From: Octopus sinensis
Taxonomy: Eukaryota
Assembly (NCBI RefSeq): GCF_006345805.1
Contig: NW_021833697.1
Coordinates: 1 to 56,556, forward strand
Direction: 5' to 3'
Length of the DNA stretch: 56,556 nt
Made by a program: the position numbers and the translations under genes. Below the pieces are notes generated by a model. That model was not told the DNA's origin, made no database searches, and worked only from the letters and a program-made list of their open reading frames with translations. Shown in pieces: positions 30,900 to 32,437 of the stretch. The stretch's first letter is position 1; each line of letters starts with the position of its first letter.

Positions 30900-31424
30900 T
30901 TCAAAGCCTCAATGGAATCTGACCCCTGAAAACATAGACATTAAATGGATGACAATGTTGATGTAAGATTTGCAATGTTGAATTACTATGTCGTTTAACG
31001 ATTCTCTTTATCTCATGCTTCTTTTTTTCTACTTCAGAATATCACATCATGTTGACGTTAAAGAAATCTCTTCATTCAGATGTACCTCTGATATTTTGAT
31101 TGACTTTCATCAATTAAAGGAAGACCATATATTCATAAGGCACATTCATCAACGCATCAATGACAAACGATAAGAAAATATTTCTTCTACGATGGAATTA
31201 AGAGCAACTTTTTTGTTGCCTTCACTGTTTGGAATGTAAAAAAGGTGATTGCTTGGATAAATTTACAAAAGTTTTAACTGTTTACATCTGCCATTTTAGA
31301 TGTTAAGCAAGAACATAGTGTTAAATTATTCTCTGAAAATACTGACACAACTGAACACAAATACATTCATAGAAATGAAAAAATCATTATCGTTGGGATA
31401 CGTATGAGAAGTTTTTATCTTATA
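30900..31424 (+). other. Conserved ZNF 5' cassette of G6
   Basis: Acceptor AG at 31036-31037 and second TTTTAG at 31299. Confidence 0.7.
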
Positions 31425-32437
31425 ATGAATGATTTAAGAAAACCAAACAAACCTGATTCAGGTGAGAGGCCATATCACTGTGATATCTGTGGTAAATTAT
31501 TCACTGAAGAAAGAGTCTTGACCAAACACAAATGCATTGATACAGGAGAGAAACCACATCATTGTGATGTCTGTGGTAAATCATTCTCTCAAAGTAGTTC
31601 TTTGACTAGGCACGTACGTACACATACAGGAGAAAAACCATATCATTGTGATATCTGTGGTGAATCATTTTCTGAAAGTGGCCACGTGACTATGCACAGG
31701 CGTACTCATACAGATGAGAAGCCATATCATTGCAATATCTGTGGTAAATCATTCTCTCGAAGTAGTGACTTGTTTAGACACCAGCGTACACATACGGGAG
31801 AAAAACCATATCATTGTGATATCTGTGGTGAATCATTTTCTCAAAATAACTCTTTAACTTATCACAAACGTGTTCATACAGGTGAGAAGCCATATCATTG
31901 TAACATCTGTGGTAAATCTTTCTTTATAAATAGTAACTTAACAATACACAGACGTATTCATACAGGAGAGAGGCCATATCATTGTGATATCTGTGATAAA
32001 TCATTCTCTACCAATAGTCATTTGACTCGTCACAAATATATTCATACTGGAGAAAAACCATATCATTGTGATATCTGTGATAAATCATTCTGTAGGAATA
32101 GTGACTTGACTAAACATAAACGTATTCATACTGGAGAAAAACCATATCATTGTGATATCTGTGATAAACCATTCTCTAGGAATAGTGACTTGACTAAACA
32201 TAAACGTATCCATACTGGATAAAAACCATATAATTGTGATATCTGTGATAAATCATTCTCTACGAATAATCATTTGACTAATCACAAACATATTCATACT
32301 GGGTAAAAACCTACATTTTATCTATTCACACACTTATTCATATAGGAGAAAAGCCATATCATTGTGATGTCTGTGGTAAATCATTCTTTCAAAAAGGCTA
32401 TTTAAGTACACATTGGCGTATTCATACACAAGTGTAA
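31425..32437 (+). pseudogene. C2H2 ZNF G6, 9 fingers then premature stops (could still encode a truncated protein)
   Basis: GAA>TAA in the linker at 32220-32222, a second TAA near 32303, a deletion, then the terminal finger and HTQV* at 32435-32437. Confidence 0.8.

Follow-up and report, generated by a model that had tools for sequence, protein, structure and literature searches.

In the vertebrate KRAB zinc-finger (ZNF) genes, degenerate fingers have been described within arrays, after premature stops and in untranslated regions (UTRs), and in ZNF252 eleven fingers, whether complete or degenerate, are found in the 3'UTR (PMC2865497, citing Looman et al. 2002). The cases described are internal fingers, spacers or 3'UTR fingers, located behind a 5' exon that encodes the KRAB domain. 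Here, we analyze a contig of Octopus sinensis (VCDQ01008377.1, assembly GCA_006345805.1), the 56,556 bp of which are referred to below as the window. It contains eight C2H2 zinc-finger genes (G1 to G8) and the start of a ninth, and their arrays are preceded by decayed fingers that probably provided the family with its start codon. As at the edges of the vertebrate KRAB-ZNF arrays, fingers without ligands or frame remain recognizable beside a live array, via stops and frameshifts in birth-and-death clusters. However, in octopus the debris is found on the 5' side, characterizes a whole invertebrate subfamily and supplies a candidate start codon and N-terminal tail.

The lineage-specific expansion of C2H2 ZNFs in octopus is well known (Albertin et al. 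2015 as cited in PMC10547256; cephalopod survey, PMC12513265), and the window belongs to the same organism group and gene kind, namely clustered, recently duplicated poly-ZNFs without a known effector domain. Term searches of the two accessible cephalopod and ZNF papers gave nothing on the 5' ends of octopus ZNF genes, fossil fingers or start codons. Another system that resembles this one is FiNZ, a 28-amino-acid (aa) N-terminal domain of cyprinid fish ZNFs (PMC10547256). Both FiNZ and the octopus leader described below are short conserved N-terminal sequences marking a lineage-specific ZNF subfamily. However, FiNZ has its own exon and no similarity to known domains, whereas the octopus leader is contiguous with the array, weakly conserved at the amino acid level and demonstrably a dead finger.

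Decayed fingers precede each array

The initial annotation, made from the letters of the contig, had proposed that the start codon and N-terminal leader of these genes were taken over from dead zinc fingers, which a finger model run over the DNA upstream of each ATG should detect. A nucleotide hidden Markov model (HMM) of the 84-nucleotide (nt) finger unit was trained on 64 intact finger pairs from the window, and the 130 to 200 nt strictly upstream of the leader ATG were scored in each copy against a null of 200 dinucleotide-shuffled sequences for each. Seven of the eight copies (G1 to G6 and G8) gave 15 to 28 bits, clearly better than shuffled sequence (maximum of about 5 bits, with 0 of 200 shuffles reaching the score of the copy), and G7 alone was borderline (3.2 bits). 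For each of the eight genes, roughly 107 nt located 5' of the conserved ATG can be matched in register to the finger unit. When the whole window was scanned (E value of ≤1), fossil matches appeared only adjacent to arrays, except for a stray half-finger at 34437 to 34478, and the background of the HMM is therefore very low. By plain blastn, the G6 upstream region matched dozens of intact fingers at an O. vulgaris locus with 74 to 80% identity. All the strings that the initial annotation had quoted from the upstream frames of G6, G8 and G3 were found at the places given. The 5' end of G6 is organized as follows.

30906 to 31317, plus strand: upstream module, non-finger, putative promoter or 5'UTR (the module consensus matches 30906 to 31318 at 85%)
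31318 to 31370, plus strand: fossil finger A, 3' part (G-K-x-F-S...H-x3-H, model nt 32 to 84), reading KLFSENTDTTEHKYIH in the array frame (nhmmer match and position weight matrix [PWM])
31371 to 31387, plus strand: decayed TGEKP linker between fossils A and B, 17 nt versus 15 expected (insert "aa" in the triple-unit HMM alignment)
31388 to 31424, plus strand: N-terminal part of fossil finger B, shifted frame YRWDTYEKFLSYN (triple-unit HMM, PWM)
31404 to 31406, plus strand: alternative in-frame ATG at −21, from former TGT-GGT (Cys-Gly) codons, with C at −3; a recorded gene model begins here
31425 to 31427, plus strand: conserved leader ATG, at a 1-nt insertion (AAT-G + a) of fossil B (HMM alignment)
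31425 to 31469, plus strand: leader, the decayed finger-B helix and TGE(K/R) linker in the original frame (PWM P = 6e-5 over 42 nt and 0.006 over 33 nt)
31473 to 31541, plus strand: first array finger, degenerate, second His replaced by Asp (six-frame reading)
31425 to 32222, plus strand: open reading frame (ORF) of 265 aa, with a premature TAA (32220 to 32222) within a linker (HTG-stop-KPYNC) and more fingers beyond, some frame-shifted, to 32425

Given its premature TAA, G6 represents the family less well than do G3, G4 and G7, which are intact. A triple-unit HMM found one colinear path through it, from −107 to +112, consisting of fossil A, 2 additional nt, fossil B, 1 additional nt at the ATG, the leader and the first real finger. 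The indels add up to +3 nt (+2 in the linker and +1 at AATG-a-ATG), and therefore fossil A and the leader are in the array frame and most of fossil B is out of it. The +1 insertion restores the frame into the live array and is located in ...CAT/TAT AAT G..., where the ATG had been claimed to lie inside a fossil CAT AAT G. This corresponds to model nt 52 to 55 of finger B, so that the ATG falls within sequence homologous to internal coding sequence. In G6, the shifted frame reads YRWDTYEKFLSYNE followed by a stop, and the ATG stands within tTATAATGaat. Both insertions of G6 recur in G3, G8 and G7 and are present across all eight copies, the 2 nt of the linker being common to all paralogs. That every paralog inherited this start agrees with the shared structure of the eight window copies, indels included; among six further O. 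vulgaris copies, the ATG and leader were kept in five and the ATG was lost in one.

A PWM in fixed register gave 36.1 bits for the consensus segment of fossil A and 15.5 bits for fossil B, each above all of the approximately 81,000 non-array positions of the window. The leader, scored ungapped in the single predicted register, had an empirical P of 4e-5 to 2e-4 over 42 nt and of about 0.006 without the linker codons (33 nt). This in-register match bears out the proposal that it occupies exactly the helix-linker stretch of a finger. The fossils thus show homology to the finger unit at the nucleotide level, beyond chance and in register with the live array, together with loss of ligands, frame or both: the Cys half is missing from fossil A, while fossil B is frame-shifted and has Trp or Tyr in place of Cys. 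In the leader, Leu, a Lys and Gly-Glu are retained, and both His ligands are gone, with Pro and Asp in their place; zinc binding is therefore impossible, and this is a dead helix rather than a finger. The ORFs of the cluster begin 15 codons ahead of the first finger. The leader has 14 codons in every paralog, without indels in any of them, and is identical in G1, G2, G4 and G6, with G3, G7 and G8 having their own variants.

Two candidate start codons

Since the ATG and its 14-codon leader both lie within fossil B, with the leader in exact register, the recruitment of a new start from a decayed finger is supported at the sequence level. Translation most likely starts at this leader ATG, judging from its conservation and context. 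It is the sole in-frame Met of the intact ORFs of G3, G4 and G7 (which end in HTQV or HTHV), and in-frame stops are found 3 codons (G4) and 6 codons (G7) upstream. Base −3 is A in the eight window copies, and the ATG is present in 13 of the 14 copies examined from O. sinensis and O. vulgaris. No variation is seen in the 9-mer ATAATGAAT among the eight window copies, and of the four O. vulgaris copies in which the stretch was read, three have it unchanged. The leader Met is also kept by the most divergent members, G7 and a UniParc fragment (P0122, see below), both of which lack the upstream ATG described next. A gene model with the exact 406-aa product of G7, beginning at the leader ATG, is on record; in exact-sequence look-ups, this was the only product found, with those of G3, G4 and the others absent.

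A second in-frame ATG is located 21 nt upstream, also in fossil B. Its frame continues into the array in G1, G3, G6 and G8 and is interrupted by TAG in G2, G4 and G5; G7 has no ATG at this position. The protein might start at this −21 ATG (MRxxYLI-MNDL...) wherever it is open, as annotated, with the leader ATG relevant only in copies with a closed frame. The longest-ORF models of both species do begin there, including the recorded O. sinensis models for G6 (31404) and G8 (48979) and O. vulgaris annotations (MRNYYLIMNNL..., MRRFCLIMNDL..., MTNYPLMMNHL... and MTNSSPVMNNL...), and the codon is in frame and open in 9 of the 13 copies examined. However, it has a pyrimidine at −3 (C or T), a weak Kozak context compared to the A of the leader ATG; besides the three copies closed by TAG, it is missing from P0122 (Thr at −21) as well as from G7, and the seven codons between the two ATGs show free variation, including one nonsense change. 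We consider a −21 start fairly unlikely. Even if it were used, the core of the proposal would be intact, as the homology of both sites to finger B indicates that the start codon is fossil derived with either ATG.

The upstream module and the sharp 5' edge

Directly 5' of fossil A there is a non-finger module of ca. 570 nt, common to all paralogs and alignable over 12 copies. It contains stops in all frames, several short upstream ORFs and no conserved ORF, and its distal half is the best-conserved part of the entire 5' region. A dispersed transposon was ruled out for the window, where the module is found only beside arrays. Finger homology breaks off in the middle of finger A, at model nt 31/32 (between the second Cys and Gly). 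The 31 nt immediately 5' of fossil A score at random level in the expected register (P = 0.70), and no more finger signal was detected at E ≤100 in 590 nt of a 12-copy majority consensus of the upstream region. From this pattern, the 5' edge looks like a discrete truncating junction, at which an older array, interrupted inside a finger, became connected to the module, and not like slow decay. The absent N-terminal half of finger A was also sought farther 5', without success; the best block, FSCLRC (offset −139), had a single-site P of 0.007, was not significant over about 150 positions and was unconserved in paralogs.

Gradual in situ decay of the N-terminal fingers, in an otherwise intact ancestor and without a discrete truncation, would leave a different edge. 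The decay of fossil B goes beyond that of fossil A only in part, and the first fingers of the live arrays are degenerate as well, with HKCID for HxxxH in G1, G4 and G6 (G6, 31473 to 31541), YHSYIHGK in G3 (about 10700 to 10630) and ...IDEPSH in G8 (about 49045 to 49115); erosion is therefore still going on at the array 5' end. Both observations fit with gradual decay, but fossil A is still strongly finger-like (36 bits over 53 nt) while the adjoining 31 nt of the same finger are random, a step within one finger that gradual decay would not produce, and the consensus holds nothing finger-like further upstream. This makes a purely gradual process quite unlikely. Consequently, of the earlier claim that N-terminal fingers were lost, the loss itself stands, with fossils A and B in register, and its mode is refined to what was probably a single truncating junction at nt 31/32 instead of gradual loss.

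Several motifs are conserved within the module. A 3'-splice-site-like motif, CTCAC...TTCTTTTTTCTATTTCAG/AATATCAC, is found at about −440 (around 30985 in G6), a TATAAAT at about −305 and an invariant TTTTAG/AT at about −125 (31294 to 31301 in G6). The −440 and −125 motifs may be intron ends or promoter elements; no conserved splice donor was found between them in the aligned copies. A mini-intron with a donor at about −196 and the −125 acceptor, linking an ATG at −261 to the fossil frame, was also rejected, as its GT is absent in G3, G7 and G8 and the frame through it is closed in every copy.

The acceptor-like motifs (CTCAC...TTCTTTTTTCTATTTCAG/AA and TTTTAG/AT) could indicate that the true start resides in an upstream coding exon, in which case fossils and leader would be a translated spacer of degenerate fingers, comparable to the stretch that separates KRAB from the fingers in ZNFs of vertebrates, and the ATG an ordinary internal Met. 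In favor of such an exon, the array frame is open 5' of the ATG through fossil A in G1, G6, G3 and G8, and P0122, a predicted fragment, reads through the fossil. Nevertheless, two intact genes, G4 and G7, have in-frame stops 3 to 6 codons before the ATG, as do G2 and G5; fossil B is out of frame with the array, G7 and G8 have upstream indels of lengths not divisible by three, each frame of the module is interrupted by stops, with no ORF conserved, and the −125 acceptor has no conserved GT donor (absent in G3, G7 and G8). An upstream coding exon is thus very unlikely in our opinion. Along these lines, nothing was found for the lost effector domain that the initial annotation had suggested: no frame of the module is free of stops, the intergenic ORFs scanned gave no match to Pfam, the ORFs of the genes begin 15 codons before the first finger, and no domain of the KRAB, SCAN, BTB, ZAD or FiNZ type was detected among these.

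A 23-nt deletion has removed CTTCTTTGTATAAATGAAATCTT, with its TATA-like TATAAAT box, from G1, G2, G5 and G6 and from one of the O. vulgaris copies. The stretch is kept in G3 (near 11060), G4 (near 20280), G7 (near 41550) and G8, and the three intact ORFs are all among the keepers, which hints that the deletion may have disabled a promoter. The module is tandemly duplicated in G1 (about 720 to 1800, minus strand) and G7 (41249 to 42235, minus strand). The two G7 copies extend from −987 to −447 and from −445 to −1, the distal one being 80% and the proximal one 72% identical to the G8 module.

Selection and condition of the genes

The arrays have been under purifying selection, with a ratio of nonsynonymous to synonymous substitution rates (dN/dS) of 0.31 between G1 and G6 over 615 nt. 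In contrast to the arrays, the upstream region has accumulated indels of 1, 2, 9, 14, 15 and 27 nt. The intact ORFs (G3, G4 and G7) encode 406 to 424 aa with 12 to 14 canonical fingers. If the whole family were non-functional debris, the ATG would be just the first Met of decaying ORFs and there would be no exaptation. G2, G5, G6 and G8 are indeed disrupted, the 23-nt deletion removes TATAAAT from G1, G2, G5 and G6, and the family is nearly absent from protein databases. But the intact genes keep their canonical fingers while their flanks have diverged by roughly 20%, dN/dS is 0.31, and intact members, with 471 and 500 aa, also exist in O. vulgaris. Altogether, we regard the debris explanation as highly improbable.

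Relatives in O. vulgaris and protein databases

Profile searches with fossil plus leader covered 5.8 billion clustered proteins and 1.84 billion representatives and retrieved three true relatives, P0121 and P0123 from O. vulgaris and P0122, the fragment UPI0006958009 from UniParc; one further, PPR-like match was false. A protein search with the extended G6 ORF was dominated by generic vertebrate ZNFs, with no close relative among them, and is uninformative on N-termini. Two O. vulgaris loci (L004 and L008, OX597842.1) contain six more module copies with the same layout as in the window. The one that lacks the ATG is located at about 17.5 to 18.1 kb of L004.

A neighboring ZNF gene of L004 (5001 to 6470), unrelated to this family, was annotated with a Met that falls in the helix of its first finger, which is degenerate (YDCDICTKSFSRKSNLIMNKQTHTGEK; L004 4944 to 5018). 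Its paralog at L004 7048 to 7971 keeps the non-finger leader MEKSEKLQELITSEQMIKEKKNLS, and in the former gene this ancestral leader is broken by stops. As in the window, the start codon was relocated into a degenerate finger in a gene duplicate; in the L004 gene, however, the finger is in frame and nearly intact and a single gene is concerned, whereas in the window two frameshifts are involved and at least 14 copies have inherited the arrangement. Comparison of these independent cases suggests that the movement of starts into finger sequence may be recurrent.

Origin of the subfamily

The best explanation for these data is probably a founder in which a 5'-truncated array came to lie on a new module and took its start codon from dead finger B. 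All eight copies share the 5' boundary and the +2 and +1 indels, with the same layout in O. vulgaris, and a common founder therefore accounts for all of them. This founder would have contained the module of ca. 570 nt, the 3' two-thirds of finger A, the linker with 2 extra nt, finger B with 1 extra nt and a live array, about 14 fingers long. An older array would have been cut in mid-finger by a rearrangement or partial duplication, which joined new upstream DNA to it and removed the original start. The remaining 1.6 fingers, no longer useful as such, would then have decayed, and the +1 insertion in ...AAT-G... of finger B would have created an ATG in frame with the downstream array. As a result, the first 14 residues of the protein would be what was once the helix of finger B with its TGE(K/R)P linker, without zinc binding. 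In copies with an open frame, the −21 ATG, of weaker context and itself built from former Cys-Gly codons of fossil B, may add seven residues. Fossil A and the beginning of fossil B would then belong to the 5'UTR or to DNA close to the promoter.

Several observations weigh against this scenario. Four of the seven genes whose arrays are wholly inside the window (G2, G5, G6 and G8) are broken. The splice-acceptor-like motifs at about −440 and −125 are strongly conserved, leaving room for an upstream exon, and existing annotations choose the −21 ATG wherever it is open. Should transcripts begin far upstream, the 5'UTR would contain several upstream ATGs. Variable columns number 7 of 53 in fossil A, 17 of 54 in fossil B and 4 of 45 in the leader, with no clean step in constraint at the ATG. 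Finally, the protein profile searches yielded no outgroup with intact fingers A and B, and the state before truncation is therefore inferred and not observed.

The finding combines known kinds of events, vestigial fingers and start relocation after 5' truncation, and is unsurprising to a specialist; it reveals no new mechanism and no new protein function. It is nonetheless a clean, datable example of a tandem-repeat gene without a 5' end that regained start codon and N-terminus from the debris of its own repeats. It is also a warning about annotated N-termini, as longest-ORF annotations of octopus ZNFs pick between two fossil-derived ATGs without evidence. In addition, this subfamily can be recognized within the large octopus C2H2 expansion by its 570-nt module, its break at finger nt 31/32 and its +2/+1 indels, which together serve as a marker. 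More broadly, it is conceivable, although we would put it at slightly less than even, that an octopus ZNF subfamily of at least 14 copies in two species derives from a single 5'-truncated array with a new promoter module and a start codon obtained by frameshift in a dead finger, and that, together with the L004 gene (5001 to 6470), this represents a recurrent rescue route for truncated duplicates in the C2H2 expansion.

Remaining copies in the window

The decayed fingers and starts of the other seven copies are the following.

G1, fossils 717 to 620, minus strand: leader ATG 619, region 578 to 717; the array runs off the window start, and a second partial module and fossil A lie further upstream (845 to 877)
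G2, fossils 4371 to 4468, plus strand: leader ATG 4469, region 4371 to 4510; in-frame stop between the −21 ATG and the leader ATG, frameshift after 168 aa
G3, fossil A 10862 to 10810 and fossil B 10809 to 10756, minus strand: region 10714 to 10862, −21 ATG 10776, leader ATG 10755; intact, 424 aa (9481 to 10755)
G4, fossil A 20452 to 20504 and linker plus fossil B 20505 to 20585, plus strand: region 20452 to 20627, ATG 20586, in-frame TAG 3 codons upstream; intact, 406 aa (20586 to 21806)
G5, fossils 28512 to 28406, minus strand: leader ATG 28405, region 28364 to 28512; ORF of only 31 aa
G7, fossils 41345 to 41249, minus strand: leader ATG 41248, region 41207 to 41345, no −21 ATG, in-frame stop 6 codons upstream; intact, 406 aa (40028 to 41248)
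G8, fossil A 48893 to 48945 and fossil B 48946 to 48999, plus strand: region 48893 to 49041, −21 ATG 48979, leader ATG 49000; frameshift after 423 aa

The G5 ORF is so short because its array is frame-shifted. The fossils of G7 are more decayed, with indels that are not multiples of three. In G8, the upstream frames contain KLFPKNSDKTEHKHSH and the second string quoted for it. The linker and fossil B region of G4 (20505 to 20585) has a 27-nt fragment of a repeat element inside. The isolated half-finger at 34437 to 34478 (plus strand), 2 kb 3' of G6, stops abruptly at about model nt 38, and the 32 nt just 5' of it (34380 to 34411) are the reverse complement of this 27-nt insertion (G4, 20505 to 20535). 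The flank of the half-finger and the G4 insertion appear to be termini of the same repeat element.

Organization of the cluster

The six-frame scan of the window, which is AT rich (GC content of about 0.36), detected 82 strict C2H2 fingers in eight arrays on both strands with 84-nt periodicity, located as follows.

83 to 487, minus strand: G1 array, cut by the window start
4517 to 5680, plus strand: G2 array (six-frame scan, as for the arrays below)
9493 to 10566, minus strand: G3 array
20718 to 21710, plus strand: G4 array
27786 to 28190, minus strand: G5 array
31557 to 32425, plus strand: G6 array
40040 to 41200, minus strand: G7 array
49132 to 50879, plus strand: G8 array
56380 to 56556, plus strand: ninth copy of the upstream module (G9), cut by the window end

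A further family member, G9, is located just past the window end. The genes belong to the Krueppel-type C2H2 poly-zinc-finger class, with tandem 28-aa units, the C-x2-C-x12-H-x3-H pattern and TGEKP-like linkers, and their best database matches are C2H2 ZNFs with PF00096 and PF13465. This is a cluster of tandem and inverted poly-zinc-finger genes under birth-and-death evolution, with live and dying copies mixed. The DNA between genes consists of satellite and repeat sequence, and a Pfam scan of the intergenic ORFs in the window gave zero matches. Large and very regular satellites are found at 13941 to 14742, 36007 to 37439, 17781 to 18718 and 47146 to 47802; the units listed for them are 73 nt × 11 (99% matches), 476 nt × 3 (96%), 318 nt × 2.9 and a 52-nt array.

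Recorded gene models (31404 to 50891 and 48979 to 50891, both plus strand) join G6 to G8 over about 19 kb, with the opposite-strand G7 in the "intron," and are also spliced around the G8 frameshifts. These G6 to G8 models are probably chimeric or over-repaired predictions of broken genes. An identical G7 protein is encoded on a second contig of the same assembly, VCDQ01005315.1 (67,320 bp; loci L003 and L007), at nearly the same offset and with matching gene models, and this contig is probably a haplotig or assembly duplicate of the window. A locus with the same G7 protein is also found in the chromosome record CM016885.1, near 12.07 Mb.

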